Part shown: in pieces, positions 7,664 through 55,871 of the stretch | Layout: each line of letters begins with the position of its first letter | How positions within the stretch are numbered: position 1 is the stretch's first letter | Translations under genes and position numbers: made by a program | Notes under the pieces: model-generated | Seen by the model: the letters and a program-made list of their open reading frames with translations, nothing else | Databases searched by the model: none | Told to the model about the DNA's origin: nothing | NCBI GenBank assembly: GCA_009859145.1 | Contig: VRVR01000034.1 | Location: 119,358-183,357, forward strand | Direction: 5' to 3' | From: Andalucia godoyi And28 | Taxonomy: Eukaryota; Protista; Jakobida | Length of the DNA stretch: 64,000 bases

Positions 7664-8027
7664 CGTCATTGTCATGCATACGGAAGTATCCATAAACAGA
7701 CATGGTCGATACTGGCCGACACTAGCACGCTTGTTTCACAGGGGAACTCGTGCTTACGCACGCTCGGCCAAAATTCAGCTTGCGACACAGGCTCCGCATT
7801 TTCGACACTCTTTAACGCAGCATCCGTAGCCATCTGTTCTATCATTCGTTGGTTCCACTTTATTAATTCAAATATGGGCTTGAGTGGGCTGGGATAACGC
7901 ATTCGCCTACGCCTACGCCGCTCGACACAGGACCTCCTAAGAGACCACGTGTCACTACGCCTACCGCCTCTTCCTCTCGTGTCACGCTGAGAAAGCGGTT
8001 CACCGATTGATCGAGATTGGGAACGGA
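7664..8027 (+). mobile_element. Copy A: internally deleted Fanzor/TnpB element relic, truncated on the right
   Basis: 7664-7760 aligns with the reverse complement of about 55775-55871. 7978-8027 matches copy B across the deletion junction (CGTGTCACGCTGAGAAAG-GG-TCACCGATTGATCGAGATTGGGAACGGA). Confidence 0.8.
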
Positions 8028-8067
8028 ATCATAATATTGTCGTGTTTTTATTTTACTTTAGCGTAGA

Positions 8068-9636
8068 CTATTGCCGCTGGCTTGCTGGGGAATGGGGAAG
8101 GGCATGAGAGCGGGAAGAGTCGGCATCGGAGTGGTCGACAAATCGAGAATAGAGCTTGTCCATGATGGCGAGGACGACTTCGACAGAGATGAGAATGATG
8201 ATGATCCACTCCAACCGATCACTCTTATCCTGATGCACGAGTTCCAAAAAGAACTTTGTGTTGTGCTGCACCAGGTTCATTTTGAAGTCGATTCCGCGAA
8301 AACGCTCTTCAAGCTCAAACTCGTCTTTCAAATCCTGCGAGACCCCAGAGTACTTCCCGTGCTTCCATGATATCTCCGACTTGTCCAGCACGCGAGTCTT
8401 GGACAGAATCTCTGCCATGAGCGTGTTGTTTTCTGCCACAAGTCGAAACAGCTCCGCACGTCTGCGCAGCCCAAACGAATAGCTACCGCTTCCTCCGGAC
8501 TGCGATGAATAGACTAGTCCGAGCTCTTCATTCAGTTTTGTAAACGTCGAAACGAGCATGTCCACCTTCTTCTCAAAATGATCCAGCGCAACTGTTTGAC
8601 GCAAAACACCCGCAATCACAAGCAAGTTGTTCAGATCGAGTTCTTGGACGACCACAGTGTCCTGCCCGGGACGTAGTTCAAACCAATGAGGAAGCTTCGG
8701 TGCAATCGCTACAGTGAAGTCGTCGTGCAAAGGAGCCGCAATCGGCTCCACAGAAAACTCCCGGATCAACCGAAGCAACGGCGTCACAGGCGTCGAAAAC
8801 GCTACACTTCCACCATGCGATCCTCCGTTCGAAAACGATGCACTCGCATTCGAAAACGACGATGACGATGACGATGACGATGACGAATAAGAATGAGTGG
8901 CAGGACTGGAAGGACTGGAAGGAACAGACGATACTGGTGGTGATGATGATGGTGGTATACCAGTAGCAGTTGCAGAAGGAGCTGTGAGAGGAGGAGGAAC
9001 AGGAGAGGAAGATGGCAACAACGAAGAAGAGGCAGAGGAGTTTCCGAAAAAGACGACGGATCCGAAACCATACACAACCATGTACAACTCAGCAGGAATG
9101 TTCGACTTGTGCGCCAAAGACTGCTGCAGCACCGAAGCGTCCCACGCAGCAGTGCCCTTGAGAGACTGCGGGGTATTCGTGAAGAACTCTGCATTGGGCT
9201 CTGAGTGTGACGGTGTGGAATGAGACTGCATGGAAACATGATCCAGGGCAGAAGCATCGAGTGCAACGGTAACCGAGTCTCGCTGCAGTGCATGCGGCCG
9301 GTCTGCAAAGTGAGTTTGAAACAATCGCACAAAGTCAATGGATCGCGCGACGTAGAACGCCTTGATGGGCAGAGCAGTTTGGATTTCCACATTGTCTGGA
9401 TGGTTGCTGCTTGAATTTGACATGTTTGAAGATGAGTGTCCAGAGTCGTGATCATTCAACTCGCGTGATGAAAAGAGTCTCTTCAACACCGTCGTCGGGC
9501 GGAATATGCTCCTCTGTGCAGATTGCACACACGGGGATGCAAATAGCAAGGAATGCGCGACTGGCGCCGCCGCTGAGAGGAACCGCTTGCCGGGCAGCAA
9601 CGGTCTTGCCGAACGCATAAGCAGGCCATTCAACAT
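8068..9636 (-). CDS. RMND1: RMND1/Sif2-Sif3 (DUF155) family protein, mitochondrial-type presequence
   Basis: IKAFYVARSID, YMVVYGFGSVVFF, QTVALDHFE, LKDEFELEERF...KMNLVQHNTKFFLEL...KSDRLEWIIIILISVEVV. Start taken at MLNGLLMRSARP. Confidence 0.85.
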   Translation of the reverse strand: MLNGLLMRSARPLLPGKRFLSAAAPVAHSLLFASPCVQSAQRSIFRPTTVLKRLFSSRELNDHDSGHSSSNMSNSSSNHPDNVEIQTALPIKAFYVARSIDFVRLFQTHFADRPHALQRDSVTVALDASALDHVSMQSHSTPSHSEPNAEFFTNTPQSLKGTAAWDASVLQQSLAHKSNIPAELYMVVYGFGSVVFFGNSSASSSLLPSSSPVPPPLTAPSATATGIPPSSSPPVSSVPSSPSSPATHSYSSSSSSSSSSFSNASASFSNGGSHGGSVAFSTPVTPLLRLIREFSVEPIAAPLHDDFTVAIAPKLPHWFELRPGQDTVVVQELDLNNLLVIAGVLRQTVALDHFEKKVDMLVSTFTKLNEELGLVYSSQSGGSGSYSFGLRRRAELFRLVAENNTLMAEILSKTRVLDKSEISWKHGKYSGVSQDLKDEFELEERFRGIDFKMNLVQHNTKFFLELVHQDKSDRLEWIIIILISVEVVLAIMDKLYSRFVDHSDADSSRSHALPHSPASQRQ

Positions 9637-9954
9637 TGTAGATGCCGTATGCAAGTCACGCAGTAGTACGCAACTTATATAAAAAAAATTGAAAGACTGG
9701 CGATATGACGGAAGCAGCAGAAGCGAAAATGAAGGGGCGGCAAAAATGAAATCGCACAACAAGACTGTGGAAAATTTGGGGAAACACCCGATACGAGAAG
9801 ATCAGAAAGGGAAAAGGACGCTGGGGAAAGAGGCGAGCGGATGCTAATGGTGGTGCTCGTTTCTCATCTCTTTTACTCTTGCAAGGGAGGGGGAGGAAGC
9901 GGGGAGGAAACAGAAGACCCATGACGGAGACAGGGTACAGAAAGTATTGTCGAT

Positions 9955-11955
9955 TTAGAGCGATCCATATCCACCGGAAGCACCAGACTGCGGCGCAGTC
10001 TGTGCAGCAGGGGCAGCAGATGCTCCCGAGTCGAACGTACCGTATGCGGCAGTTGATTTCGGCTTGCATCCATTGATGAGGAAGACGAATCCTTCCATCA
10101 CGAGTCCGTAGATCGATCCCCAGAATTCGTGGTTCGGGCAGGACTCGACACCGCGGGTGCCCTTCGCAAAGGTCTTGAAGAGGAATCCACCGCCAAAGTA
10201 GACTGCCGAAACAACGACAAGGATGATGATGAAGATCCAACCGCCAGAAAGACCCTTCTTGGCGCTGCCGCCATTATCCGAGCCATGGCCGACGCAGAAT
10301 CCAGCAGGACATCCAGCAAGCGACGAGACCACAAAGTGGTACGGGCCGCAATTGGACTCATATTCGTCAATGAACTGAATACGGCCAGAGAGATCCACCG
10401 ATGCATCGCAGTCGCACTTAAAGTCAATTTGAGACGTTCTGGGGATTCCGTGGCAGCCCACAAGGGTGTTGTACTGATCGCCATTGTAGATGTGCATCGA
10501 GATGCCGGCATTGGAGTTGGAGGTGTCGAGCAGAGTAAAGTTTGTCATCGCCGAGTGGGTTCCGCACTTTTTGCACTGTCCACCGGTGGCAATGGCCAAC
10601 TGCGCAACCGTCTCTGCGTAGATTCCACAACCATCCTTGATGATTCCGCATGGATTCAATCGGTACTTGAACTGCTTCGACGGCTGCGACGGGTCTGTTC
10701 CGTTTCGGATCTCGTAATAGTTTGCAGTGGCCACGGCATTGAGGTCATAGTACGATCCACCGAGAGTGGTCCTGCACCATGCAGGGTTCACAACGGGTGG
10801 CTGAGAGCATGCCTCGATGGGGCAGGCCGCCGCGGAAGACGCAGTAAACTCGTACGGGCCGCACTCTGCTTTCAATTCACCGGCAAACTTGAGGTTGTCG
10901 AGCATGGACGATCCCGAGCAGTCGCACGTGATGTTGATTCTCGACGATCGCTCCACTCCAGAGCATCCCGGAAGCGTGTTGTACGGGTCTCCATGCACAA
11001 TGCGCATGGAAACACCGGCCATTGCATTCGTCGGATCTAGCTGGGAAAGACGAGTGTCTCCGGAATGCGTTCCGCAGTCCTTGCACTGTCCACCAACGAC
11101 ACCGACAGGGAACTGTGCAACGGTCTCGTTCATGAAAGAGCACCCAGACTTCACGTATCCGCAGGGGTTCAATCGGTAGTCCATGCGAGGGGCTGCTGGG
11201 ACATCGGGCACCTGGTAGGCTCTGCCATCGGTGTATGCAATTGTGTTCAAATCATAGCGGTTACCATCTGCCGCGGTGAACTGGCACCATTCGGGTTGAG
11301 CAGTAGGGGTCACCGGGTTGAAGTTGCAGAAGCCAATGGGGCATGCTGCTTGCGAACGAGTGGCAAAGACATAGGGTCCGCAGGTGGATTCCGACTCGAA
11401 GAACACCGATCCCGAGAACAACGTGTTGGGCGCATAGCAGTCGCAGTGCAGCCGCACAAGCGTGTGTCGCGACCGGTTGGTGCAAGGCGCGGAGTTGTAC
11501 GTATCACCATGGTCATACTCGATGGTGAGTCCCAGTGTCGGGTTGATCGGGTCCAACAGCATAATGACTGCATCCTGGTCATAAGCCCCGAGCGATTTGC
11601 AGAGCGCGCCCTGTGCAACCGTAGCGTTGCGCTGCGTTGCAGACGTCGTCTTTCCGTTCGGGCACTGGGCACTCGCTGCAAGCGTTCCACACACTTCGAG
11701 TGTAAGATCGTATTTTGCAGGGTCGGTAGGCTTCACACTCCTCGTATACAGCGTCGTTCCAAGGCCATCCGCAGACTTTAACACCGAGAAGTCCCAGTTA
11801 TACGTCGCAGAAGCTGTCGTTGTCGTGTACGTGCACGGGGGGCTTCCCTGCGCACCACACAGTGCCGCAGCACACACCACCACTACAGCCACACAAGCGA
11901 CACTCGCCGAAAAAGACATAGAAGACACTCGCATCACGGACACACACTCACACAC
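9955..11955 (-). CDS. Mannose-6-phosphate-receptor-like type I membrane protein with three MRH domains
   Basis: Signal peptide; three Cys-rich repeats each ending R-x-(S/T/H)...C-x-C...E...CGPY-x-F; TM segment GLSGGWIFIIILVVVSAVYFGGGFLF; ATG27/CD-MPR-like tail GTRGVESCPNHEFW. True start may be the second or third Met. Confidence 0.8.
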   Translation of the reverse strand: MCECVSVMRVSSMSFSASVACVAVVVVCAAALCGAQGSPPCTYTTTTASATYNWDFSVLKSADGLGTTLYTRSVKPTDPAKYDLTLEVCGTLAASAQCPNGKTTSATQRNATVAQGALCKSLGAYDQDAVIMLLDPINPTLGLTIEYDHGDTYNSAPCTNRSRHTLVRLHCDCYAPNTLFSGSVFFESESTCGPYVFATRSQAACPIGFCNFNPVTPTAQPEWCQFTAADGNRYDLNTIAYTDGRAYQVPDVPAAPRMDYRLNPCGYVKSGCSFMNETVAQFPVGVVGGQCKDCGTHSGDTRLSQLDPTNAMAGVSMRIVHGDPYNTLPGCSGVERSSRINITCDCSGSSMLDNLKFAGELKAECGPYEFTASSAAACPIEACSQPPVVNPAWCRTTLGGSYYDLNAVATANYYEIRNGTDPSQPSKQFKYRLNPCGIIKDGCGIYAETVAQLAIATGGQCKKCGTHSAMTNFTLLDTSNSNAGISMHIYNGDQYNTLVGCHGIPRTSQIDFKCDCDASVDLSGRIQFIDEYESNCGPYHFVVSSLAGCPAGFCVGHGSDNGGSAKKGLSGGWIFIIILVVVSAVYFGGGFLFKTFAKGTRGVESCPNHEFWGSIYGLVMEGFVFLINGCKPKSTAAYGTFDSGASAAPAAQTAPQSGASGGYGSL

Positions 11956-12485
11956 ACACTCTCTCTCTCTCGCTCACTCTCTCTCTCTCTCACTCTCTCT
12001 CTCTCTCTCGCTCGCTCGCTCGCTCGCTCTCTTCAAAGAGAAGGGGGAAATGTTCCGAAAAACAGGAGAAGAAGCAGAAGAAAAAAGAAAAAAGTAAACA
12101 AATAAAAACCAAGTTTTAAAAAGGCAAACAACTAAAATAAAATAAAAATGAAAATGAAAAACAATATAGAAAAACAATATAAAGCGAAGAAGAGGTGCAC
12201 GAGAGAAGACGAGAAGGGACGGGACAAGGAGAAGAGGGTTTGGCCTTTAAAGGACTTTGGGGGAAGGGAAAGAAATGGAAGTGAACGCGAATACGGGAAG
12301 TTTTCCGATTTCAAAAGGGGGAAAAGACTTTGCAAATCGGACTTGGCGAGCGGTAAGCGGTAAGGGAAAAAAACTCCCATGGGAATTGTTGAATTCCCTT
12401 GTTGATGGGAGGTGACGTGTCATTTGACGCTTGATGCTTCTGCTTTTTTCCTCGGTGCGAGTACAGCAGATGTTGCGTGCAGTCT

Positions 12486-12526
<41 letters not shown>

Positions 12527-12556
12527 AGGCGAGGTTTGGTGCACGACGTCTTGCTT

Positions 12557-13111: not shown

Positions 13112-13614
13112 GTTTGCTCGCTTGATTAAGAGGGGGGGAGAGAGAGAAAATAGCAAAACTAAATTCAAAAAATAAACTAAAAATATTCTTCAACAATCAG
13201 AAAATCACGTGAAATGCGAGTATGTTTTACAACTACAACAAAATACCAAAACAAAAATAAAAAAGTAAAAAAGTGTATTGAAGAAACCATTATCGGAAGA
13301 TAAACAGCAAGAAATGGACGAGCGGATTGGCCTCGAGAAAGGGCAATGGCGTTGGAGGGAAATGGGCCGACGACTGGTGGACTGATGGCGTCGTAATCAA
13401 CCCAACTGACTTTTTTTTAATTGAGATTATTATTATTGTTATTTAATTTTTGGACGCAATAAAAAAAAGAAAAGAAAACAGCAAGGGAACGACAGAGTTA
13501 CGACTGCATATCTATTAAGTAAAAATAAATATATATGTATATACAAAAGGCGAGCGACAACCGGACAGCGTGCTGGTGGGGCGGTTTGGCTACAGATTTT
13601 TTGACCGAGCATGA

Positions 13615-14505: not shown

Positions 14506-15334
14506 TGTCTCCCTTCTCTACCTACGGCTATTCCCACAAACACGATGCTAGAGACTGCTCGTATTGGCTCCCCTCTTTGGAAATTTGAAAAGACGGAAGT
14601 GAAAAAGAAACGGAAAAACGAAAATGAATGAACAGGAAATGAAATTGAAATAGAAAATGAAATGACATCTCATGCGAAAAATGAAAGCGACATCCTTTGG
14701 GACTGGGGGGTGGTTAGGGAAACGCATTCTTCTCTCTCATTCATGATTTCTCCCTCCCTTGGAGCTGTGACAGTCCTGATGAGTCGGTGAGCTTCCTATT
14801 TTGGAGTTCACTGGTCACCACCGGCTGCCAAAGACTGCTTGTATGTCCAAGCAGACTCGAAGACCATCGGCCGCCCCCAGATCCCTTGCTCATCCCTGCC
14901 AAACACCCGTGCTACCCGGCCCTGGCTGGAAGAAGGAAACATAACCCAGTTCCTCCTCCATCACCACCACCGTCACCACCACACCAAAAGTACTCCCAAC
15001 TCCACAGTTTCCACGGCACGAGAAGAGCAGCCGGACTGACATACATATACGAAATAGTCGACACGGAACCTGGATCGCTTCACGAAAAGAAGAGGAAGGA
15101 AAATTCTCCTCTTGATCTACAAATATCGCGATGTCGGTGAAATTCACGCAGATTATCTGCGTGCAACACCAACGAAGAGGATACGCGGGGGGAACAGCTA
15201 TATTCGAGTGCGAGAGATTTCCTGGGACACGACATCCGCAGGAACATAAATAACACTGTAGACCGAATTCTCGGGAGACAGAATGCGTGTCTGGGAGTGT
15301 GTATGTGTGTGTGTGTGTGTGTGTGTGCAAAGGA

Positions 15335-17434: not shown

Positions 17435-17789
17435 GATGATGACGATCCGTCGTGGATTTTTTTTTCTCCTGCCACTCCCTCTGTGTGTGTCTATATGTAT
17501 GTATGTATGTATGTATGTATCTGTGTGTGTGTGTGTGTGTGTGTGTAGTATGCGTAAGCGTATATCTGTCAGTCTATCTATGAGTGCATGTTCATCTGCC
17601 TGTCGTCGTCTCCATTCTTTCGTCTTGTTCTGCCTTTTGTTGTTCTTGTCTGACTTGGGGGCATTTCGAAGAAGCAAAGAACCCTGCGTGGGTTGATGCT
17701 GGAATGGTTGATGCTTCGACGTCCCAAAAAGAAAGGCAGCGGGCGTGGGTACGTGTTGGACTGCTGCTGGAGGCGTGAAGAAACGGGCT

Positions 17790-18395: not shown

Positions 18396-18550
<155 letters not shown>

Positions 18551-18559
18551 ATTCAGCAA

Positions 18560-19501: not shown

Positions 19502-19643
19502 CACCCCCCTCCCGGGGGGGCCCACACAACAGTTCTCGACTGAAAACACATTCGCATTCGCACCTGTCGTTAGCGTTCTTCTGCCATCATCCCCGAGTTG
19601 TGTAGTGAATGTCAAAAAAGAGAAGACAAACGCCAAGAAAGGA

Positions 19644-19697
19644 GAAGAAGAAGAAGAAGAAGAAGAAGAAGAAGAAGAAGAAGAAGAAGAAGAAGAA
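19644..19697. repeat. (GAA)n microsatellite
   Basis: Read directly; lies between convergent genes. Confidence 0.95.
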
Positions 19698-19819
19698 AGG
19701 GCTGCGTCCAAGGAGCACGATTATGTCAATGAGGAAACGACTCCTAATGTAAAGAAATTGCATGAAATATGCAAGCTCAAACACAGCCCAACACACAATG
19801 CAGCATCAGAAAGCCCAGT

Positions 19820-20797: not shown

Positions 20798-20803
20798 GGG
20801 GAG

Positions 20804-20835
<32 letters not shown>

Positions 20836-20836
20836 A

Positions 20837-20881
<45 letters not shown>

Positions 20882-20951
20882 AAAGAAGAAGAAGAATAAT
20901 AGGAGTAGTAGTGGTGGTGATAATTCTCGATTGTATTTCTGCAAAGACCAC

Positions 20952-21920: not shown

Positions 21921-22077
21921 ACGTGCAGGGTGCAGCACGTCTCTCCTCTACCCCTCTCTGGGCACCACCTCCTCGTCATCCGCCACCCATAAACAATTCG
22001 CATCTGCGCGGCGGCCTATGTGCGTATTTGTGGTCTTGTGGAACTTCTTCGCAGCGAAACATTTGTATACTGGTATT

Positions 22078-22127
22078 TCTTCTTCTTCTTCTTCTTCTTC
22101 TTCTTCTTCTTCTTCTTCTTCTTCTTC

Positions 22128-22159
<32 letters not shown>

Positions 22160-22160
22160 G
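22078..22160. repeat. Compound (TCT)n(TGT)n microsatellite
   Basis: Read directly from the sequence. Confidence 0.95.
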
Positions 22161-22846: not shown

Positions 22847-22920
22847 TGTTCAGAAACGCTGACCGGAGGGGATAGAATCCAGTACACCGGAATGGTTGCT
22901 CAACACGTGGGAGAGAGTGT

Positions 22921-22974
22921 GCGTGTGCGTGTGCGTGTGCGTGTGCGTGTGCGTGTGCGTGTGCGTGTGCGTGT
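22921..22974. repeat. (GCGTGT)n hexanucleotide repeat in a divergent intergenic region
   Basis: Read directly from the sequence. Confidence 0.9.
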
Positions 22975-23335
22975 GTGTGTGGGAGAGAGAGCGAGAGTGA
23001 GAAAGTGAGAAAGTCCACACTCAGAACTCCAGACTCGGGAGAACCAAAAAAATTAAAAATTAAAAATTAACCGAGAATTTCTTTCCGGTCGTAAAGTTCG
23101 AACAATCGTTTGTTTGTTCGCTTTTACGGTCAGTGGGAAGATGGCTTTGTTTTTTCGCGGTTGTCCATCCTGGAGCTGCAAGAACGCGTTTCTGGGGAAA
23201 CTGATGAATGCACCCAGGCTGGAGGAAGAAGGGATAAAAATTAAAAAATTAAAAAAAGACAAGGGGGAAAAGAAAGATAGCAACCAAGGAGGGGCTGGAT
23301 TTTTGTTGACAGGAGTGGTGAAAGATACTGCGGTG

Positions 23336-26494: not shown

Positions 26495-27267
26495 TGCAGG
26501 AAAACACTGCCATCTGTCTTTGCAAATGCCACCACTACCATCTACACTGCAATAATGCTAAGAACAAAGATAATAATGATAATAATTACAACAATATGAC
26601 TTTGTGCGGAGAAGATTTGAATTTTCATATTTCATTTCTTTGTTCCACTCGACCACAGGAAACGGGGGAGCTCTACAGGCGTCCCAACGCCCTGTTCCTG
26701 GGGCTTGCAGGAATGAGGACGATTGACCACTGATGATAATGGTACATCGACGCAGCGAGCGAGGGACAGGGTGTTGGCCGGCCCCATCGAGCAGCGACCC
26801 CAGTGATTCGCCTCACCGCGATCAGCGGCCAATTTTTTCTCTCGCAGAACAAAAGATCTTCTCTCTGGGGTCTCTTCCGAAGTGGATGGGAAATGTGTAC
26901 CAGTCGCGAAACGTGCGGATGCGGGAGACTGGACTACTTTTTGCAGCGTCGGCGCATCGGCTCCTGCACGGATGTGCGTGCAGCCGTGCAAGCTGAACAA
27001 AAATGGAAGGAACCGCACTCCCGGTTACTTTGCTCTGCAACCTCTGCTGCACGCCCCTTCGTGTCTCTCCGGTGTCAGAAATGATTTTTGTTTCGCCTCG
27101 CACATGCGAGCTGCAGCGGGATTCGTTGAACAGGAAAAACTGGAATTCAGGACTGTGTTGTGCTCCGCTCAGGGGCTCCCACGAACAGAATCATTCCTGG
27201 CGTCCTTCATGTGTATATATGTGCATGTATGCATGCATATGAAAGTACCCGCTTCGTCATGTTCCCA

Positions 27268-27314
<47 letters not shown>

Positions 27315-27413
27315 GTCTCTCCGTCTTTGCGTATCAGTCTGCCTCTTTCGTTCTACCTCCTTCTTTCTGCCTGTTTTGACGCTTCCTTTACCTTAACTCC
27401 TACTGCATAAGAA

Positions 27414-42029: not shown

Positions 42030-42330
42030 TACATTGCATGTCTCGTTTGCATATTATTAATTTTTAAATGTATAAAAATTTACGAATGCGGGAAGATTGT
42101 GGTTGTGAAGGGTTGTGTGCATGTGCGTTTCATAAACTTCCTTGCGACTGCTGGGAAGAACAATGTGCATCGTCATGCATCAAACGTCTACAGAATGGCA
42201 GGTGGCTTTTGATTGTACTTATCTCGGGTGGTCACTTTTTGCAAAGATAACAAATATCGCCTGCGTTTATTATTTTGTATGTGACGCATTGCTCTATTGT
42301 TTTCTGTTTTTTTTTTCTTCCGTCTCGCCA

Positions 42331-42645
42331 CATGGAATCTCGGCGTACGTGACGGCCCCCTGCGACGGTGGGGGAGAGTGGGCCGCCTCAGGGCGGATCC
42401 GAAGCGTGTGAACCAGTTCGCACCACATGTATAAACAACAACATCGATGACATCGGAAGAAGAAGAAAAAGAAAAAAGAAAGACCGTCCGGCAACTCGTC
42501 GAAATTGAGAAAGCGAAATCAGTCGTGTTCTATGCAAGAGTCTCGTCGATCCAACCAAGAAGCGAACCTCCCAAGCTAGAATGCCGATCTCCGTGTGTAG
42601 CCTTGTGCCGACGCCCATGCCGAGCTCGACGGTGACACCGCCAGA
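42331..42645 (+). pseudogene. IS607-type TnpA serine recombinase relic (MerR-like HTH plus catalytic N-terminus)
   Basis: Across small indels it reads HGISA...LRRW-AASGRIRSV*TSSHHMY (HTH) and then VVFYARVSS-SNQEANL...DLR...ELDGDTAR (YARVSS catalytic motif, Q-x-x-D/N-L, D-x-A). Confidence 0.75.
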
Positions 42646-42680
42646 TGCTGTCGCGGGAGAGTCATTACAGTGATTCCCGT

Positions 42681-43586
42681 CTAGTCCCGTTCGGGGTCCA
42701 AGTCCACAAACTCCGTCCGTTCAAAACCGTTTCTTCGTGCAGAGTAATCCTCCAGAGTCTTTTGGAGCTCTTCACGAGTGTTCATAACGAACGGCCCATA
42801 ACGGGCGATGGGCTCGTCGATTGGCTCGCCAGCGACCAGCAGAACGCGGGCACCCGCCTTGCCAGCCCGAAAACCGATTACAGATGCCGAATCTTCGTTC
42901 TTGTTCCGGAATACTAGTGTTGCGTTTGGATGCACTTGAACCGGGTCCCCAGAAGTCGGCTCTGTCACCGTCAGGGTTCCCTCCACTGGAAATACAAATC
43001 CGTGCCAGTTCGCCGGAATCGATTCGGTGAATTGCAATCGTTTCTGCGGAGCTAGTGTGATGTCCAAGTACAACATTGGGGTCAGCCATCCACCTTCTGG
43101 CATGTTTGTCAACCCATGACTTGTTCCTACAACAACGCGAACAGACCCGCCCCCCTCCTCCAGTTCATAAACCGGCATGTTCTTCAGATCACGATAAATG
43201 GGCTTGCACATTTTGTCCTTTTTTCGAAGATTGATCCACAACTGGAAGCCTCGCGTGCGAATGCCTCGCACCATGGCTTCATTATGAATGATACCTCGAC
43301 CGGCAGTCATCCACTGTGCTTCGTGTGGTCCGATTGCGCCTTTATGTCCCTTGCTGTCCTTGTGCTTGATGCATCCTGAAATCAAGTACGTCAGCGTTTC
43401 AATTCCGCGATGGGGATGCGGACTCAGAACGGGTTCGTCATCAACCCCAAGGTTCGAATCCCAGGCGTCCCACAAAAGAAACGGACCAACGTTATTCAAG
43501 TCTTGCTGGCCGATGCTCCGATGCACGATTGCCTTTGGACCGAATTCATTGGTCTTTGTCGGTGGATACACAGTCACAATCTCCAT
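42681..43586 (-). CDS. PIR: Pirin (bicupin)
   Basis: GPFLLWD, PHPHRGIETLTY, QWMTAGRGIIHNE, GFQLWINL, EPIARYGPFVMNT. Start taken at MEIVTVYP. Confidence 0.93.
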   Translation of the reverse strand: MEIVTVYPPTKTNEFGPKAIVHRSIGQQDLNNVGPFLLWDAWDSNLGVDDEPVLSPHPHRGIETLTYLISGCIKHKDSKGHKGAIGPHEAQWMTAGRGIIHNEAMVRGIRTRGFQLWINLRKKDKMCKPIYRDLKNMPVYELEEGGGSVRVVVGTSHGLTNMPEGGWLTPMLYLDITLAPQKRLQFTESIPANWHGFVFPVEGTLTVTEPTSGDPVQVHPNATLVFRNKNEDSASVIGFRAGKAGARVLLVAGEPIDEPIARYGPFVMNTREELQKTLEDYSARRNGFERTEFVDLDPERD

Positions 43587-44010
43587 TTCTCTCCCCCCTC
43601 TTTCTCTTCTTTTGTTTGTTTGCTTTGAACTTCGAAAGGATCTATTATGAGCAAGGCTAAGGAACAGTTGGAATTTTTTGAAACAACAGAAAATGAAATG
43701 AAAAGACATTGAGAAAAGAGAAACAGAGAAACCGAACAATGTATCGTACATATGGATCACGCACTACGAAAGCGGCAGCGGTAATATGCCGAAATATCTC
43801 CGACGATTTTTGCGGCTCCGTTCCGATTTTATTGCCGCTGCAGAAACCCACAGCCCGTCACACGCCACACAAAGTCACACGTCACGAGCACGGCTGCGGA
43901 CCGCCGACAGGTTTGGTGGGCCGAGGAGAATCGGAGTTATGCAGCGAGTAATCATGATGATGATGGTGATGCTGATGACAGGTTGGGATAAAATGTATAC
44001 TGTTTTTATT

Positions 44011-45068: not shown

Positions 45069-45115
<47 letters not shown>

Positions 45116-45414: not shown

Positions 45415-48400
45415 ATGTCTGTTTCCGACCGTTCCGATTTCCGACGCGAGGTCTTGCTTTCGCATTTGCAATCCGTGGCAAGTGCAAGTGAGGGCGATGC
45501 CTTTTCTGCGGTTCTGAGTGCCGCTGATGTTGCCGGTACGGTATCCTCCTCCCCATCTCAACAAAAGCTTCTGACCACTGTGTCTGTGCGACCAGACGGG
45601 GTAGCCATTATCACCATTGACAACCCACCAGTCAACGCCCTTTCGGCACTAAACGTGGCTTCGATTGATGCTTCTTTCCAGCAAGCTTCTGCAGACCCGG
45701 CAGTGAGGGCGATTGTTCTTACTGGTGCTGGACAAGCGGCCTTCGTTGCAGGTGCGGATATCTCGTTTCTGCAGGAGCAACAGGAAAAGAAACTGTGTCC
45801 CCTGTCGTTTATTGAGTATGGAAACGGTGTTTTGAATGCAATCGAAAAGTCCACAAAGCCTGTGGTTGCCGCGCTAAATGGAGTTACGCTTGGCGGTGGC
45901 CTTGAACTTGCTATGGCATGCCATGCGCGTGTTGCGGCTCAAAACGTTGTTGTCGGACTGCCTGAATTGAAGCTTGGTGTGATTCCTGGCTTCGGCGGAA
46001 CGCAGAGACTTCCCCGGTTGGTTGGAGTTGCAAAGGCTTGCGAAATGATCCTTACTTCGAAGCAAGTCCCTGCAAAGGAAGCGGCGCAAATAGGGCTTGT
46101 GGACTCCGTTGTTGCCACTTCTGTTGTGGATGCTGCTGTCGCTCTTTGCAACGACTTTATCCGAGGACAAAAGCCGCTGCGCCGTGCCCTCCAACTCCAG
46201 ATTGAAAACAAGGAAGTTGCTCTTGCAGATATTGCGAAGGCACGGAAGCTTCCCGTGGTTAAACTGCCTTTCCACTTGGCTGCTTTGAATGCAATTGAGG
46301 CCGGCGTTCTGACAAGCCCCTTCACTGGAGGATTTGCGGCGGAGGGAAACGAGTTCGCGCGCTGCTTGCATTCGCCAGAGTCGCGTGCGCTTGTCCACTT
46401 CTTTTTTGCGTCTCGTAATTCCAGCAAAGTTCCTTCGTCCTCCAACCCGAACCAGTTCATTTCGGTTGCAAAGGTCTCGCCGAAGACGTGTCCTGTAGTC
46501 GGAGTCGTCGGTGGTGGACTGATGGGTGCTGGAATCGCAACTGCTGCGTTGCTGGCAGGTTTCCGTGTACTTGTCAAGGAGATCAATCCACAATTGGCAG
46601 AGGCTGGAAAGCAGCGCATTGTGCAGAACCTTAAAGGGCGCAAGCCGGTTGATATCGGGAAAATGCTGAATGTGCAAACCGACTGGTCGGGATTTGAGCA
46701 ATGCGGCGTTGTCATTGAGGCTGTCTTGGAGATTGTCGATCTGAAACGCAAAGTCTTTGCGGAGATTGAAAAGGTCGTCTCACCATCGTGTATTCTCGCA
46801 TCGAACACGTCGACCATTTCATTGCGTGTTATTGGTGAGAATCTGACCACCAACCAGAAGAAGCGCCTCGTCGGACTCCACTTTTTCTCTCCAGCGCATC
46901 TCATGCCTCTGCTTGAAATTGTTCGCGACGACATGACTACTTCCGAGGAGGCCGTTGCGTTTTCTCTTGGGTTTTCTGCTGCACTTGGAAAGACGGCCAT
47001 TGTCGTTGGCAACTGCTCAGGGTTCGCTGCGAATCGTGTGTTCTTGCCATATGGAGAAGCAGCCCATTTCTTGGTTGATTCCGGAGTTTGTCCGTATGCA
47101 ATTGACAAAGCGCTGGAGAAGTTTGGATTTCCCATGGGTGTTTTCCGGATGTCGGACATGGCTGGCTTGCACATTTCTGCATCTGCACAAAAGTACATGC
47201 AGGCCGCATATCCCGACCGTGCGTATGTGTGTCAAGTTGCGAATGCGTTAGTGAAAGACAACAAGATTGGGGAGTATTCCAATGAAGGATTTTATGTCTA
47301 TAAGACAAATGAAAAGGGTCGCAAGGATGCATCGCAGAATCCGAACTTGTCGAGGTATATCGATGATGCCCGCGCGCGTCGTCCAATCGCGTTTGATGCG
47401 ACTGGCTTCAGTTCTGATGAGATCGTGGACCTCATTGTGTTCTCCGTTGTGAACGAGTGCTGCCGTGTCCTTGATGAAGGGTATGCTATTCGCGCAGATG
47501 ATTTGGATGTTGCGTCGGTTACCGGATATGCTTTCCCTGCGCATCGAGGTGGAGTCATGAAGTACGCTGCCGAGCGTGGGTGGGATGTTGTAGCGGATCG
47601 ACTTGCGCAGTTCTTCCGTGTTACTGGCCTTGAACTGCTCCGTCCGTGTGATTACCTGACTCAGCTCGCGAACAAGACCGCGAAAAGGGGTAAGAAGGTG
47701 TTTGAGAAGTCGGACGATGATGTCGTTATTGTTGCTGCAACTCGCTCCGCCATGGGTCGTGCCAAACGAGGATCTTTCGCGGAAACTCGCCCCGACCTCC
47801 TGTTGACTCCAATCTTGAAGGCCCTTCTTCAGAAGTCGAAGATCGACCCCTCGTTGATTGACGATATTATCATTGGAACAGTTTTACCGAAGAGCGACGT
47901 TGGAGCTGTTGAGACCCGAATTGCTGGACTTGCTGCTGGGATTCCCTCGTCAACGTCCGTTCGATGCTTGAATCGTCTTTGCTCATCCGGAATGCAGGCC
48001 ATGTGTGACGGTGCTGCTGCTATTCAAGCAGGCTATTCGAACATTGTGATCGCAGGAGGAGTAGAGTCCATGTCGATCAATCCTTTTGACTGGACTCTGG
48101 TTCCCAAGAACGAGGCGTATCAGAAGGCTGGAATTACGGAAGCTATGGATTGCTATTTGCCCATGGGTATTACTGCAGAGAACGTTGCCCGAAAGTACGG
48201 TGTGTCAAGAGTTGAGCAGGATCTGTTTGCCGTCGAGTCGAATCGTCGAGCATTGAATGCCATTCAGAACGGATATTTTGCGCAGGAGATCACACCAATC
48301 GAGACTACTCTCCAAGGAAAGTCCGTTGTTGTTTCAACCGACGAAGGCCCGCGTGACACGACCATTGGTAGCCTTATGAAGCTCCGGCCGGCCTTCATCA

Positions 48401-48873
48401 AGGATGGCTGCTCCACTGCTGGAAACTCCTCCCAGCTCACAGACGGTGCGGCGGCGGTTCTGATGATGAAGCGATCAAAGGCCCGTGAGCTCGGAATGAC
48501 TATTGTGGGCGTCTGGCGCGGAGCCGTTTGCGTTGGAGTTCCGCCAAACATCATGGGTGTTGGTCCATCCGTTGCGATTCCCGCGTTGTTCAAGAAGTAC
48601 GGAGTGGAAAAGGATGATATCGATGTTTACGAAATCAACGAGGCCTTCGCCCCTGTCCCAATGGTTGCGTCTCGTCTGATCGGGCTAGATGCATCAAAGG
48701 TGAATCCAAATGGTGGCGCAATCGCCATGGGACATCCATTGGGATGCACTGGCGCTCGCATCGCTGTTTCTTCTTTATACCATCTCCAGCGCACTGGAGG
48801 TCGCTTTGCCTGCCTTAGTGCTTGTGTCGGTACTGGTATGGGCTATGCAGTCCTCTTGGAGAAGGAGTACTGA
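45415..48873 (+). CDS. Single-chain beta-oxidation enzyme: enoyl-CoA hydratase + 3-hydroxyacyl-CoA dehydrogenase + 3-ketoacyl-CoA thiolase
   Basis: Crotonase motifs (FVAGADI, LGGGLELAMACH, GLPELKLGVIPGFGGTQRLPRL); dehydrogenase motifs (GGGLMG, EAVLE, SNTST, HFFSPA); thiolase motifs from about 47710 (VVIVAATRS, NRLCSSG, QLTDGAAA, EINEAF, NPNGGAIAMGHPLG, CVGTG). No stop codon between modules. Confidence 0.93.
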   Translation: MSVSDRSDFRREVLLSHLQSVASASEGDAFSAVLSAADVAGTVSSSPSQQKLLTTVSVRPDGVAIITIDNPPVNALSALNVASIDASFQQASADPAVRAIVLTGAGQAAFVAGADISFLQEQQEKKLCPLSFIEYGNGVLNAIEKSTKPVVAALNGVTLGGGLELAMACHARVAAQNVVVGLPELKLGVIPGFGGTQRLPRLVGVAKACEMILTSKQVPAKEAAQIGLVDSVVATSVVDAAVALCNDFIRGQKPLRRALQLQIENKEVALADIAKARKLPVVKLPFHLAALNAIEAGVLTSPFTGGFAAEGNEFARCLHSPESRALVHFFFASRNSSKVPSSSNPNQFISVAKVSPKTCPVVGVVGGGLMGAGIATAALLAGFRVLVKEINPQLAEAGKQRIVQNLKGRKPVDIGKMLNVQTDWSGFEQCGVVIEAVLEIVDLKRKVFAEIEKVVSPSCILASNTSTISLRVIGENLTTNQKKRLVGLHFFSPAHLMPLLEIVRDDMTTSEEAVAFSLGFSAALGKTAIVVGNCSGFAANRVFLPYGEAAHFLVDSGVCPYAIDKALEKFGFPMGVFRMSDMAGLHISASAQKYMQAAYPDRAYVCQVANALVKDNKIGEYSNEGFYVYKTNEKGRKDASQNPNLSRYIDDARARRPIAFDATGFSSDEIVDLIVFSVVNECCRVLDEGYAIRADDLDVASVTGYAFPAHRGGVMKYAAERGWDVVADRLAQFFRVTGLELLRPCDYLTQLANKTAKRGKKVFEKSDDDVVIVAATRSAMGRAKRGSFAETRPDLLLTPILKALLQKSKIDPSLIDDIIIGTVLPKSDVGAVETRIAGLAAGIPSSTSVRCLNRLCSSGMQAMCDGAAAIQAGYSNIVIAGGVESMSINPFDWTLVPKNEAYQKAGITEAMDCYLPMGITAENVARKYGVSRVEQDLFAVESNRRALNAIQNGYFAQEITPIETTLQGKSVVVSTDEGPRDTTIGSLMKLRPAFIKDGCSTAGNSSQLTDGAAAVLMMKRSKARELGMTIVGVWRGAVCVGVPPNIMGVGPSVAIPALFKKYGVEKDDIDVYEINEAFAPVPMVASRLIGLDASKVNPNGGAIAMGHPLGCTGARIAVSSLYHLQRTGGRFACLSACVGTGMGYAVLLEKEY

Positions 48874-48912
48874 AAATGATTCTCGCTTCGTCGTAAAACG
48901 CTAGTAGTTTAA

Positions 48913-49573: not shown

Positions 49574-49884
49574 CTCACCGTTTGTTCGTTAAAAAAACAC
49601 GATCACAGTCGATTCAACGAAAAAGAATGAAGCGAGAGAGTAAAGACCTTCTGCAGACAAGTGAGTCCTTGACATCCAGAAGCACGCAAAACCACAACCT
49701 CCCTTTTCTTAATGTTCCAACTTCTCTTCTTTACCCTACTTTACCCCACTCACCCATAAATTGCAGACAGTGCTGTTCTGCTCGCCCTTTTTCATTCACT
49801 CAAGTCCATCGTCATTCGTTTTTTATTTTTATTTTTATTTTTATTTTTATTGTTTGGTGTTGTTGTTTTTTAAATTTAAACCCA

Positions 49885-50294
49885 ACAAAAATCACCCTCT
49901 GGAATCCGACGACAGACTTGAGACGAAAACTGGCCAAGTGGTTTATGGGCGCTGTATGACTGTGTCCTGCTGCCAAAGTTTGAGACGGCTGGAATGGTCT
50001 TGAAAGACGGACGACGAATCATCAACAACAAGGCGTCAAATGCTGATTTGTGCCACTTTCAATTCCGACAAAAACTGCTGCATAAGACGACGGAATACGC
50101 GGACCGCGAGATCCACGCTGTGACCGAGGAGTGCACCTCCAAGACATGTGGACTTTGTGACGTTATTCATGAGCGGCTGGGGCGAAAACAAAGTGCTCTG
50201 ATGCCCGTTCTGTCTGGCACATCTGGATCGAGATCGGAATGGTGCACGCAACATCCGTTTGAAGAACGCTCCCATGCATAGTGTAAAATGCAGG
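49885..50294 (+). pseudogene. Copy E: Fanzor2/TnpB C-terminal RuvC and Zn-finger relic with terminal motif
   Basis: Across frameshifts and a stop: DLRRKLAKWF / YDCVLLPKFET...CHFQFRQKLLHK...VTEECTSKTCGLC...LG / ENKVL*CPFC...LDRDRNGARNIRLKN, then AGTGTAAAATGCAGG. Confidence 0.9.
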
Positions 50295-50562
50295 CAAACG
50301 CAAGCAGAACGCAAGACAGAAGAGAGGCATCCAAAAAAAGACGCCGTGTACAATTTGAACTCTTGTCACCGGTTGGTATTACTGAGAAGCTCAAATCTTG
50401 CAATTACTGGTGCGCAACTTGGTGACACCCCTCTCTCTTGAGTGGCACACGTTTGATCGCATTTCACTAGCACACGGCACATGATAACCAAATATCTCGA
50501 GCACGGATTTGGCGTGCAATAGGAAGCAGATAAACGTAGATGGGGGAAAAACGGACAAGGAT

Positions 50563-51501: not shown

Positions 51502-51915
51502 ATTTTGAAACTGACGACGCCGCAGTGCATAAAGAAAAGAGAGACAGAGAGATAGAGAGAGAACCCCGGGCAAGGAAAAGAAAAATGAATGGGTGAATGA
51601 AGAAACATGCGGGCTTGTGAGGCTTCGTTTTCGCTTCTGGAAACGGGCGCCAGTTTGGGCTTCCAGGTTTCAGTGGACGGTGTTGACGGATGTCGACACT
51701 GGAAGAACCACTCGGGCTAGGACTCGGGACGGGCATGTCTTCCAATGGAGGCAGCGGGAGAGGGTCTTTGGGAGGAGGGCAGTCCACACCTCGGGAGCAG
51801 TGATGGCGTGGTCTTTAATTCTTTGTGTTTTCTTTTCTTCTTATTTTGATCATTTGCCTATTTCTGGTGAAGGAAGAGAGGAAAATAGCGCTTTTTGAAA
51901 TAGTTGTTCCCGAAC

Positions 51916-53274: not shown

Positions 53275-53416
53275 TAGCCATGTTGCCAGTCGCAATAAAC
53301 ATTTCTTTTTTTGTCTACACGACTTTCCGACGCGACGTCTGTCAGCACGTTGGAATATGATTCCTGTCTTCAGAAAGTTGCGTATACGGGAGAAGAAAAT
53401 AGGAAGAACACTCGCT

Positions 53417-55198
53417 TCAAGCTTGCGAAAGCGGACTCTGCAGCGCAAGGGGCAGCATCTGGATTACACTCTTTCGCAACGTCTCTAAACGCGTAACCAT
53501 CTCCATGTCGTTCCACGACTTGCAAGTATCCTGAAGGTCTGTAATGCGAAGGCACACGTCAATCTTTTGAACATCGGACTTGTTCAGGAACATGGAGCAC
53601 AGTCGATCAATGGAACATATTTCGAGAGTTGAAATAAGGAACGAGCGCCACATCATAATCAAAAATGACTCAAAAAGCTGCGTCTCAACGAACGACTCGT
53701 ACAACGCAAGAATGGCTTTTTCAGAGCCTTGTAACATTTTTTGATCGTATCCGTGCGTTTTCACATAAGCAAGGAATGTGTGGGAAGGGAAAATATTGTG
53801 CACTTCTGCACAAATCAGAATATCCAGGGATTTTGAATTCCAAATCTGCTGGAACGCGAGTTGCAGCGGGAGTAGAAATGCATTGGTCAACTGAGAGAAG
53901 TAGCGACGAAGAGTTGCAGAATTTGCGGCAACTGAAGCCGAAGAATGAGATCGGTCGTCCACAAGCGACGAAATGACGGACTTGTCAACTTGCAAAATAG
54001 GTTTCGAAGATGCGTTGAATCGCTTCTTAAAATCCTCAGTCAAGCTCAACCTCTTGTCTAATTTCTTCGGCGTTCGAAAAGGAGAAAAGGAAAACGACGA
54101 TGTCATAGAGTCGAATCGCTTGTGCGGTGTTTTCTTCGGTGTTTCCGAAGCAGCAGAATCCGAAGAACCTTGCTGTCCAAAATCTATTGACCCGTGGAAA
54201 CACCGAACATGCCAGTGTTTGGAATCCGATGAATCCGTGGAAGACGACAAGCCTTCCTGCATCCGAGGATCGTCTCCGAGAGACACGAAGTTCGGCCAAT
54301 CGGCAAAAGCCTTCGTAAAGAATGGATTGGTTGCCCCAACAACTGCATTATAAGAGCCTGAAACCCCAATTGACGACAAGGACTTGAATTCTGAGTCGTG
54401 GATGGTTGTGTACGGTCTGAGAATCCCTTGAAACCGCAAAGGAGAAATAATGGACACAATGGCAAACACGGCAGCAGAACTTTGATGAGGGGTTGGGGCA
54501 AGAACCCACAGCGGCTCTTCCCGAATCAGAATCTCCCATATGTGCCACAGATGCGGTGCATTTGCAGAACTGAACGCTTGGCCGATTTCACAGTCTTGGA
54601 ACGCAAACGAGCGGCCCGTTAAGAACGAATTTTGTTGCGAGTCTACATTAACGGAGAAGACGCTGTTATCAAAAACAGGTGTCCGATAAGCGAGGGAATG
54701 GCTGCCGATGCAGAGCTGAGGATAAGACGTATCGGATATCACATCGGGCCATGAGGCGATCTGCTCGGCGATTTCCCTGAACAAAACGTTGGCCAGCTGA
54801 CTGGCCTCCAGATCGTTGGACGATGAAGCGCGAATACGACGCACCACCTCGGATCCCACGACATGTGCCATCTCTCCAAGAAGGCGTACGAATGGAAATC
54901 GCGACACAATGCACACAGATCGCTGCGAATACCGTCGCTTCGATGTTGAATCAACATAGCGAAAAAAATGAACGCCGACAAAGTATCGACGAAATGTGCA
55001 GACATAGACAGACTCGACCTCAGAAGATGGAGATATGCATTCTGAACTAAATTCTGGAAGTCCGACGAATGCGAGTTCAGAAAGTGCGTCGGCCGCAAGA
55101 GCCTGGTCTGGATGCACGAGCTCCACTCGCTGTCCATCTTCAAGATGAAAATTCACAAGAGAAAAGCAAACAAACCATTTACGAGGAAGCTCTGGCAT
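53417..55198 (-). CDS. DENND6: DENN domain protein, DENND6/FAM116-like
   Basis: CFSLVNFHLEDGQRVELVHP, YSQRSVCIVSRFPF, LWHIWEILIREEP, RPYTTIHDSEF, VVGATNPFF, LRRYFSQLTNAFLLPL. Confidence 0.85.
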   Translation of the reverse strand: MPELPRKWFVCFSLVNFHLEDGQRVELVHPDQALAADALSELAFVGLPEFSSECISPSSEVESVYVCTFRRYFVGVHFFRYVDSTSKRRYSQRSVCIVSRFPFVRLLGEMAHVVGSEVVRRIRASSSNDLEASQLANVLFREIAEQIASWPDVISDTSYPQLCIGSHSLAYRTPVFDNSVFSVNVDSQQNSFLTGRSFAFQDCEIGQAFSSANAPHLWHIWEILIREEPLWVLAPTPHQSSAAVFAIVSIISPLRFQGILRPYTTIHDSEFKSLSSIGVSGSYNAVVGATNPFFTKAFADWPNFVSLGDDPRMQEGLSSSTDSSDSKHWHVRCFHGSIDFGQQGSSDSAASETPKKTPHKRFDSMTSSFSFSPFRTPKKLDKRLSLTEDFKKRFNASSKPILQVDKSVISSLVDDRSHSSASVAANSATLRRYFSQLTNAFLLPLQLAFQQIWNSKSLDILICAEVHNIFPSHTFLAYVKTHGYDQKMLQGSEKAILALYESFVETQLFESFLIMMWRSFLISTLEICSIDRLCSMFLNKSDVQKIDVCLRITDLQDTCKSWNDMEMVTRLETLRKSVIQMLPLALQSPLSQA

Positions 55199-55438
55199 GT
55201 AACTTCAATGGGCCGTACCTCTGAGTGGTGTACGTGCTTGCCTGCTGGTCAACGGCCTGTTACTGCTCGAAAAATCCAATCTCAAAAAAAATCCGTTTCC
55301 CGATCAAGAAGTCCATGCCAGACGACGCCTCCCAGATGGCTACTGTGTGCTTTCAAAAAGGAGAAATGGAAATGTGTGGTTCTGCCGGATTTTTTTATTT
55401 TCGAGTCAGGACCCAGAAGTTCAAAACTCACGACTCAG

Positions 55439-55871
55439 GAGCACCTACATTATACACTGAATATGCATATCTACGAATAGACATGCATATTCAATCCTGC
55501 ATCCCGTTGGCTGGAAGGGGATCGGCCCCAACACGCCTCACGGCGTTCTTCAGATAAATGTTCCGCGCTCCGTTCCCAATCTCGATCAATCGGTGAGCCA
55601 CTTTCTCAGCGTGACACGTTGTTCCTGAGAAGGGTGCATTTTGATTCTGACGGCCCTAGCAGCAGGCGCTTTCGTGTCCTCAGCTGCAGCGCGATTGATG
55701 CACCTGGAGATACGAGATCGTGTCTTGGAAGTTCGCCTCTTGGCAGTGCGCTGAACGAATGATAGATGACTACGCGTAAGCACGGATTCCTGTGAAGCAA
55801 ACGTGCTAGTGTCGGTCGGCTAGTATTGACCGTGTCTGTTTATGTATACTTCCGTATGCATGACAATGACG
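55439..55871 (-). mobile_element. Copy B: compact non-autonomous Fanzor derivative (5' region, N-terminal HTH fused to RuvC-III end, complete putative omegaRNA end)
   Basis: RAVRIKMHPSQEQRVTLRKWL (TnpB/IS605-OrfB N-terminal HTH) abuts IDRDW-NGARNIYLKN...RVGA, followed by a 16-bp UUCG hairpin and AGTGTATAATGTAGG. Confidence 0.88.
55458..55493 (-). ncRNA. 16-bp hairpin with UUCG loop in the putative omegaRNA scaffold
   Basis: UGAAUAUGCAUGUCUA-UUCG-UAGAUAUGCAUAUUCA. Fully paired (one G-U) on the minus strand only. Confidence 0.55.

Follow-up and report, generated by a model that had tools for sequence, protein, structure and literature searches.

The 64-kb window of DNA from the jakobid Andalucia godoyi And28 analysed here (nuclear assembly GCA_009859145.1, contig VRVR01000034.1, positions 119,358 to 183,357, taken at its full length) contains five nuclease relics, A to E, that derive from one Fanzor2-type gene, together with a relic, T, of a tnpA gene for an IS607-type serine recombinase (Table 1). 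The relics are very probably decayed and internally deleted copies of an IS607/Fanzor2 transposon, of which defective forms were copied before the family died. That the relics are real is confirmed, and they are new for A. godoyi; the type of system is already known. Stops, frameshifts, and deletions of 100–340 codons are present in all of the nuclease copies, and none is an intact gene. An initial annotation, made from the sequence alone, had described six frameshifted relics; all six are in the window and the frameshifts are there, but the copies are not merely frameshifted, being internal-deletion derivatives, and a seventh relic, the sixth of the nuclease, lies just upstream.

An intact eukaryotic IS607-type element ('IS607EU') is about 2 kb long and carries tnpA, the Fanzor2 nuclease gene, and an omegaRNA. 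The tnpA product, a serine recombinase, catalyses excision and insertion of the element in double-stranded form. The omegaRNA scaffold is transcribed from the final ~150–200 nt, a region into which the nuclease gene extends with its 3' end, and the guide is read from the DNA just past the right end; in living elements the complex of nuclease and omegaRNA cuts the empty donor site, upon which the element is copied back (restorative homing).

The window yields 2,291 stop-to-stop fragments, all of which were compared with a family profile of 104 full-length relatives. Relic D matches this profile at E = 2.4e-31 (its C-terminal frame at 6e-8), Pfam PF07282 at 1.6e-12, and IS607_TnpB, its best NCBIfam model, at 3.7e-11, in keeping with the RuvC-II region and zinc finger initially placed near 49885–50270. 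When the longest uninterrupted frame of D (49922–50278) was used in an exhaustive HMMER search, 874 relatives were returned, the best with 50% identity over ~83 residues, and all the relatives of D that were tested are TnpB-family proteins; the stitched D peptide gave no match in a word-indexed protein search and none in a scan of giant-virus contigs. Relic C (33109–32864) matches the family profile at E = 2.9e-10, and the N-terminal piece of relic E (55816–55595) at 1.1e-4. The same piece matches the N-terminal extension of the closest relative, protein P0249 of a metagenome contig, at 1.6e-7 with 35% identity over 80 residues, and it contains the N-terminal helix-turn-helix (HTH) predicted at 55590–55665, which reads RIKMHPSQEQRVTLRKWL. 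DNA similarity connects relics A and B with the others: A with E (85% identity over 106 bp and 96% over 50 bp), and B with C (E = 1.8e-7) and D (6e-11). With profile matches for three of the fragments and DNA ties for the other two, the derivation of all five intergenic pieces from one TnpB/Fanzor-like gene stands.

Fanzor and pro-Fanzor proteins are defined by a DPG motif in RuvC-I and a glutamate located six residues before the first CxxC, ExxxxxxCxxC (Yoon 2023, PMC10711439). Relic D reads VTEECTSKTCGLC-x14-CPFC-LAHL-DRDRNGARNI, which corresponds to E-x6-CxxC-x14-CxxC-x4-D, and the alternative glutamate, the zinc finger, and RuvC-III are thus all present; the zinc finger, CGLC-x14-CPFC, has one stop codon and a frameshift within its spacer. 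At the canonical glutamate position D reads LLPKFET, and the residue there is variable among the relatives. No relic keeps the RuvC-I region, and the DPG motif is seen in P0249 (ALDPGVRSF) and in the relatives' consensus (ALDPGVRTF), which also has VTEEYTSKTCG. Of the DRDxNGARNI ends attributed at first to all five copies, those of D and E are whole, C and B have degenerate versions (DWNGALNI and SRDWNDARTF, respectively), and A stops after IDRDW. The tail that follows NGARNI had been read as 'GVLGP' before P0249 was known; comparison with this intact relative corrected it to RRVGAYPLP.

The solved protein most similar to the family is mimivirus L79 (ApmFz2; PDB 9b0l), matched by D at 6.3e-10 and by the family profile at 8.8e-61, and a PDB search with both D and the profile gave no Fanzor1 structure at ≤1e-3. 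These sequence matches to solved proteins support assigning the predicted nucleases to Fanzor2 rather than to Fanzor1, and, together with the alternative glutamate, zinc finger, and RuvC-III, bear out the Fanzor2 type proposed for them. The alignment of the family profile begins at L79 residue 55, within the N-terminal domain that is unique to Fanzor2 (L79 residues 53–130; Schargel 2024, PMC11832414).

The lesions in the relics are mostly large deletions and some of them are present in more than one copy, showing that already defective derivatives were copied. Relics A and E have one deletion junction in common, including the same extra G after TGG (96% identity over the 50 bp that span it), and differ in their middle parts and in a further 3' deletion in A; in E the HTH coding sequence runs straight into IDRDW/NGARNIYLKN (55590–55512). 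Relics C and D have a common 5' structure, consisting of a T-rich stretch (upstream of C it reaches ~33260 and resembles that of D) after which the frame resumes near residue 425, and C has lost the RuvC-II glutamate and zinc finger by deletion. Relics B and D share a C/A-rich block of ~100 bp, block X, with 69% identity, directly upstream of CATCGTCATTC. Block X has no match in intact relatives, and could be the left end of the element, part of another repeat, or an insertion. The possible right-end remnant of A adjoins the stop codon of an RMND1-like gene (8068–9762, leftwards-transcribed). Residue numbers of the relics refer to the extended protein of contig L004, described below.

The DNA examined comprises the window and 6 kb upstream of it (L001), ~70 kb in all. 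The additional upstream relic was found with a DNA profile of the common 3' tail (L001 2968–2845, E = 2.3e-8), and the protein match reaches 3201; it covers reference residues ~457–572 and has a complete 3' RNA module, and with it the spacing of about one relic per 10 kb holds over these ~70 kb. A covariance-model search with filters off gave no further copies in the window. Weak matches at 23.4–23.95 kb (E = 0.02 with the protein profile and 0.23 with the DNA profile) were dismissed as chance because they lie on opposite strands and inside a long open reading frame (ORF), and do not match the reference protein.

The recombinase fragment, initially placed at 42331–42645, has the layout of IS607 TnpA, with an HTH (LGVRDGPLRRWGRVGRL), a spacer, and VVFYARVSS-SNQ where the motif YxRVSSxxQ is expected; read through one stop and one frameshift, its HTH and serine motif are spaced as in IS607 TnpA. 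It is cut short by a leftwards-transcribed host gene (42681–43760). The only NCBIfam family that matches T is transpos_IS607 (NF033518; E = 2.7e-5); the score, 23.8 bits, is under the 110-bit cut-off, as just a third of the gene remains. Relic T also scores 18.4 bits against a profile of 21 giant-virus IS607 TnpAs and shares 32% identity with the TnpA of contig L103 in an 81-aa alignment (E = 1e-6); the stitched peptides of the relics match both TnpB/Fanzor and serine-recombinase profiles. Relic T lies 7 kb from the nearest nuclease relic. Its upstream region is unconvincing as either block X or the left block of A and E, the likeness being of T-rich low-complexity sequence only, and no tnpA remnants are detectable in the overlapping frame of A and E, where a match apparent by eye did not score.

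The link between recombinase and nuclease comes from the relatives. P0249 is encoded on L004, a 13-kb JGI metagenome contig with 50% G+C, and is 57% identical to the protein of D; the L004 DNA is 73% identical to E over 180 bp and the similarity extends 57 nt past the P0249 stop codon, which gives the true reading of the tail, DRDWNGARNIYLKNAERRVGAYPLP..., and the nuclease frame is open to the contig end. In another frame L004 carries a decayed tnpA, FQYKRPSTLLERVCC*AIYIVVVAHRNRRSR (11 bits, profile positions 104–157). The second-closest relative, P0009, is on L103 (a Logan SRR24358103 contig of 2,029 bp), where an intact 270-residue IS607 TnpA (208 bits) is encoded directly upstream of the nuclease gene and overlaps it. 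Among 74 giant-virus (IMG/VR) and 23 metagenome loci there are 28 distinct tnpA genes directly upstream of fanzor, and solo Fanzor2 copies also exist, for example in Lipomyces (L005). With tnpA in the two closest relatives and at the 28 loci, the family is IS607-linked, and the adjacency of the two genes that the initial annotation put forward as a check is seen in intact form in L103, in decayed form in L004, and at the 28 loci. A 179-aa ORF upstream of fanzor in the giant-virus and metagenome set (L002) was considered as a TnpA and is not one; the real tnpA there is in another frame, overlapping the fanzor call.

A different origin, in which the source of the nuclease relics was a transposon of some other class (one with a Fanzor1-like gene, or with Fanzor2 between terminal inverted repeats) and the tnpA fragment is unrelated, is very unlikely. 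Some Fanzor2 genes do lie inside non-IS607 elements (PMC13565253), others are solo as in Lipomyces, and T is linked to no nuclease relic in the window and has modest scores; however, tnpA or its remains occupy the overlapping frame of the two closest relatives, neither terminal inverted repeats nor remnants of a DDE transposase are seen around the relics, and an IS607-type recombinase fragment lies within the same 64 kb.

The L103 contig starts ~40 nt before tnpA begins, and its last nucleotide coincides with the right end proposed for the element. It may represent an entire element of ~2.0 kb, the assembly having been interrupted by its repeats, and would in that case provide a reference for the left and right ends. 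No informative match to the window was found for the 5' end of L103.

Another feature of the related giant-virus and metagenome IS607-type elements is that the fanzor reading frame, +1 relative to tnpA, stays open through the 3' two-thirds of that gene. Zero stops interrupt the overlap frame in 27 of 28 distinct loci, and the +2 frame has 11.7 stops on average. The Fanzor N-terminal motif K.LKPFW...WLP.KTD...NSWFS is encoded by the same nucleotides as TnpA SGINWKRKGL...VVAHRDRLCRFGFE, and in alignments this stretch corresponds to the N-terminal domain of mimivirus L79 that only Fanzor2 proteins have. The PFW motif is retained in the solo Lipomyces Fanzor2, which has no tnpA remnant left. The open overlap frame, the common nucleotides, and the persistence of the motif in Lipomyces suggest that the domain found only in Fanzor2 arose by overprinting of tnpA. 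A text search of a set of Fanzor and OMEGA papers found no description of overlapping tnpA and fanzor genes, and an N-terminal domain encoded in a second frame of tnpA seems more surprising than the relics themselves.

Each nuclease fragment of the window reaches or comes close to the 3' end of the gene, where a structured RNA module is located. The module spans ~150 nt, starting at the NGARNI codons and stopping at the right end; it is complete in B, C, E, and the upstream copy, and most of it is missing from D and A. The four complete copies, L004, and L103 align to a common end, ...AGTGTAnAATGTAGGCG, where both the homology and the L103 contig stop. RNAalifold predicts 33 pairs in three main helices, with 153 nt modelled: helix 1 pairs the NGARNI codons with GGCGTGTTG, helix 2 pairs GGCCTAC with GTAGGCG at the very end, and a 17-pair hairpin lies between the helices. 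In the six sequences 88% of cells are paired, compared with 28–47% when the partners are slid by 1–3 columns, and the observed pairing values were reached by none of 500 shuffles. Compensatory changes occur in 11 pairs, as in L103, which has GCCTGG...CCAGGC where the others have GCCTAC...GTAGGC, and conserved G-U pairs argue for a sense-strand RNA rather than a DNA hairpin. The covariance model, R1, detects D, which is not in its training set, at 26.9 bits (E = 1.2e-5), and gives weaker matches at the 3' ends of several viral fanzor genes, where the signal is partly coding similarity. Rfam has no family for this module, and no known Rfam family was found in the window. The overlap with the 3' end of the gene, the stop at the right end, and the long-range terminal helix are as expected of an omegaRNA, so that the module resembles an omegaRNA scaffold as modelled from the aligned sequences, and the covariation backs the initial placement of an omegaRNA at the 3' end of the ORF and the right end of the element.

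Under the favoured explanation, in which the relics are remains of an IS607/Fanzor2 family, the defective derivatives would have been copied to new sites, most likely through mobilisation in trans by a then-active autonomous copy, as in derivatives of the MITE-like (miniature inverted-repeat transposable element) or PATE-like kind. The family would have died thereafter, at least in the assembled genome, and the relics would now be inert intergenic spacer DNA. Consistent with this, there is no intact reading frame of the family in the ~70 kb examined and no intact relative annotated in A. godoyi, as represented by the EukProt and NCBI proteomes in a large protein collection in which nothing is more than 55% identical to P0249.

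It is unlikely that the relics are anything other than inert, either as omegaRNA mini-elements served in trans by an unassembled intact Fanzor2 and TnpA, or as modules adopted by the host as small RNAs or regulatory sequences. Such activity would fit the complete 3' modules that persist in B, C, E, and the upstream copy despite ruined reading frames, the hairpin of E (z = -4.66), and the copying of dead derivatives, and the A. godoyi genome paper states that subtelomeric scaffolds, mainly transposon- and viral-like sequence, were omitted from the assembly, with transposons otherwise not discussed (PMC7050145). The modules are, however, only 64–73% identical between copies, which points to an old age for most of them; little of the module is left in D and A; position and orientation relative to neighbouring genes are inconsistent; and the A. 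godoyi proteomes lack an annotated intact relative. Less likely again is the specific case that a living IS607/Fanzor2 system persists in the unassembled subtelomeric scaffolds and that the relics are its 'guide-only' passengers, mobilised in trans or homed, or host small RNAs; were it true, this would be the first eukaryotic counterpart of the prokaryotic PATE-type derivatives.

Several observations weigh against the decayed IS607/Fanzor2 family with copied defective forms. The left boundary that relics A and E have in common, CGTCATTGTCATGC, falls within coding sequence, an odd starting point if movement requires both ends, and the common junctions could stem from ectopic gene conversion or dispersed duplication and not from transposition. 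Neither an intact copy nor a left element end was found in the examined DNA. The scores of T are modest, at 18–24 bits and under the NCBIfam curated cut-off, and T and the nuclease relics have no demonstrable DNA in common within the window. Six sequences underlie the covariation, four of which belong to a single genome, and the structure model was itself built from these six.

Table 1. Positions of the relics and their parts, of a host gene, and of tnpA/fanzor overlaps in related elements (window coordinates unless a contig is named).
Feature	Positions	Strand	Description
Relic A	7664-8075	+	Internal-deletion derivative of the nuclease gene; DNA similarity to E
A, left block	7664-7764	+	Fanzor2 N-terminal-domain coding region, common to E
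A, deletion junction RVTLRKRF/IDRDW	7978-8027	+	Extra G as in E
A, possible right-end remnant	~8050-8075		After further deletion from 8027; weak, MAFFT alignment only
Relic B	18074-17783	-	Last ~45 nuclease codons, block X upstream; DNA similarity to C and D
B, block X	18074-17956	-	Common to D
B, CPLSCPA	17958-17938	-	Second zinc-finger CxxC
B, SRDWNDARTFQRVGAYP	17928-17878	-	
B, structured 3' module	17922-17783	-	Covariance model 95 bits, training member
Relic C	33207-32780	-	Begins near reference residue 425; covers ~425-500, then tail
C, ATLRKTCDNLHRRWAAA	33109-33059	-	
C, HYQFQQRLLCKSHEFAGRQV	33009-32950	-	
C, DWNGALNIY	32947-32921	-	
C, EGRVGAYPFP	32893-32864	-	
C, structured 3' module	32947-32780	-	
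Relic T	42324-42636	+	5' third of IS607-type serine recombinase gene (tnpA)
T, LATWNLGVRDGPLRRWGRVGRLRA	42324-42395	+	MerR-like HTH
T, VVFYARVSS	42522-42548	+	Catalytic-serine motif
T, SNQEANLPS*NADLRV*PCADAHAELDGD	42550-42636	+	After frameshift
Relic D	49719-50295	+	Begins near residue 425; T-rich stretch and block X upstream
D, block X	49719-49819	+	Followed by T-rich stretch
D, nuclease part	49903-50279	+	Last ~125 codons in three frames: NPTTDLRRKLAKWF, YDCVLLPKFETAGM, VTEECTSKTCGLC, CPFCLAHLDRDRNGARNIRLKNA
D, VTEECTSKTCGLC	50120-50158	+	Alternative Glu and first CxxC
D, CPFCLAHLDRDRNGARNIRLKNA	50202-50270	+	In-frame stop ahead of it
D, ATGCATAGTGTAAAATGCAGG	to ~50295		Remainder after ~110-bp deletion of most of the 3' module
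Relic E	55874-55439	-	Reference residues ~100-194, then ~533-572
E, TDTSTFASQESVL...	55816-55778	-	Fanzor2 N-terminal-domain part, then basic stretch
E, RIKMHPSQEQRVTLRKWL	55648-55595	-	HTH start, then internal deletion of ~340 codons
E, IDRDW	55590-55573	-	+1 nt
E, NGARNIYLKNAVRRVGADPLP	55574-55512		
E, structured 3' module	55581-55439	-	Complete; perfect 18-bp hairpin, z = -4.66
Seventh relic (sixth nuclease)	L001 3201-2835	-	2.8-3.2 kb upstream of window position 1
Aminotransferase gene	3957-5453		Host gene in window
Overlap locus L002	4940-5707		
Overlap locus L006	3202-4023		
Overlap locus L012	3400-3993		
Overlap locus L026	3325-4008		
Overlap locus L103	3-815		
Overlap locus L004	~230-400		Decayed tnpA

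Every relic is intergenic, located between ORFs and taking up much of its spacer, and the host genes among them are ordinary eukaryotic ones, including those coding for a Rev1-type polymerase, an ATG27/mannose-6-phosphate receptor protein, the RMND1-like protein, and a leucine-rich repeat protein. This setting bears on the proposal that the fragments are debris of integrated giant-virus DNA and not a cellular transposon family, which we regard as highly improbable. The proposal draws on the 74 IMG/VR loci with relatives, among them chloroviruses and many GVMAG bins, on the mimivirus source of the closest solved relative, and on the mention of viral-like sequence in the genome paper (PMC7050145), but the relics are 300–600 bp long and solitary between cellular genes over 70 kb, have no other viral gene beside them, and have the G+C content of the surrounding DNA, and their common deletion junctions reflect copying within the genome. 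A viral vector for the original arrival is compatible with a cellular IS607/Fanzor2 family that later decayed.

Two further observations concern the host DNA. A single rightwards-transcribed ORF of 1152 residues (45415–48873) comprises an enoyl-CoA hydratase, a 3-hydroxyacyl-CoA dehydrogenase, and a complete thiolase, placing in one chain all three beta-oxidation activities of the trifunctional enzyme. Di- and trinucleotide microsatellites are frequent in this otherwise compact genome, in intergenic and possibly coding positions (5913–5988, 11959–12037, 12486–12531, 15284–15327, 17482–17546, 18396–18550, 19639–19698, 20804–20884, 22076–22160, 22907–23012, and 27265–27328), and several of them create spurious long ORFs, for example at ~17.6–18.6 kb.

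These relics extend the host range of IS607-type Fanzor2 elements to a jakobid, which belongs to a deep-branching eukaryotic lineage and has a very compact genome, and illustrate how surveys of intact ORFs miss lineages in which only relics are present. They occupy much of several spacers in a gene-dense genome and so bear on DNA gain and loss, and the 3' RNA model together with L004 and L103 makes genome- and metagenome-wide searching straightforward. The element type, its proteins, and its RNA have already been characterised biochemically and structurally, and the finding itself opens no new question.

Of the systems already described, mimivirus L79 (ApmFz2) and its element ISvMimi (PDB 9b0l; Jiang 2023, PMC10530073; Schargel 2024, PMC11832414) resemble the relic family in the alternative glutamate, the zinc finger, and DRDxNxARNI, and L79 has the Fanzor2 N-terminal domain and an upstream tnpA, as do the relatives of the relic family. 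In the L79 system, too, the omegaRNA scaffold and the nuclease gene overlap at the 3' end of the latter, and the last scaffold nucleotides take part in a long-range pairing, as in the module described here; the L79 omegaRNA is ~205 nt long, whereas the RNA modelled for the window family has 153 nt in a model without a pseudoknot. L79 is an intact viral gene, whereas the copies in the window are defunct pieces of one that reside in a cellular genome, and protein identity between L79 and D is low (42 bits).

The 'IS607EU' elements (among others ACa-1/2, CRv-1, and ISvNY2A_1; Bao and Jurka 2013, PMC3627910) have the same gene content, a serine recombinase and Fanzor2, and, as here, no evident terminal inverted repeats and protist or virus hosts. 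NlovFz2 of Naegleria represents the other Discoba lineage with a studied Fanzor2 (PMC10432273). Compared with both, the host here is a jakobid and only relics are present; Andalucia and the jakobids are not named in the Fanzor literature and supplements searched, and non-autonomous derivatives copied after dying are not described for either family in the literature cited. A functional match to the A/E and C/D pairs is found in the PATEs and MITE-like derivatives of prokaryotic IS200/IS605 elements, which are gene-less, keep terminal structured sequence, and use proteins supplied in trans. Those derivatives move as single strands via a Y1 transposase and keep both end hairpins; the window relics would instead have been mobilised by a serine recombinase, and no intact left end could be identified for them.

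Bacterial IS607 elements, with TnpA and TnpB, provide the families of the best NCBIfam models for both D and T, and the cyanobacterial pro-Fanzor TnpBs (PMC10711439) have in common with the relatives of the relic family the DPG motif and the alternative-glutamate site. The relic family differs from both in that its relatives have an N-terminal domain of the eukaryote or virus type, its scores are far below the bacterial equivalog cut-offs, and its host is a eukaryote.

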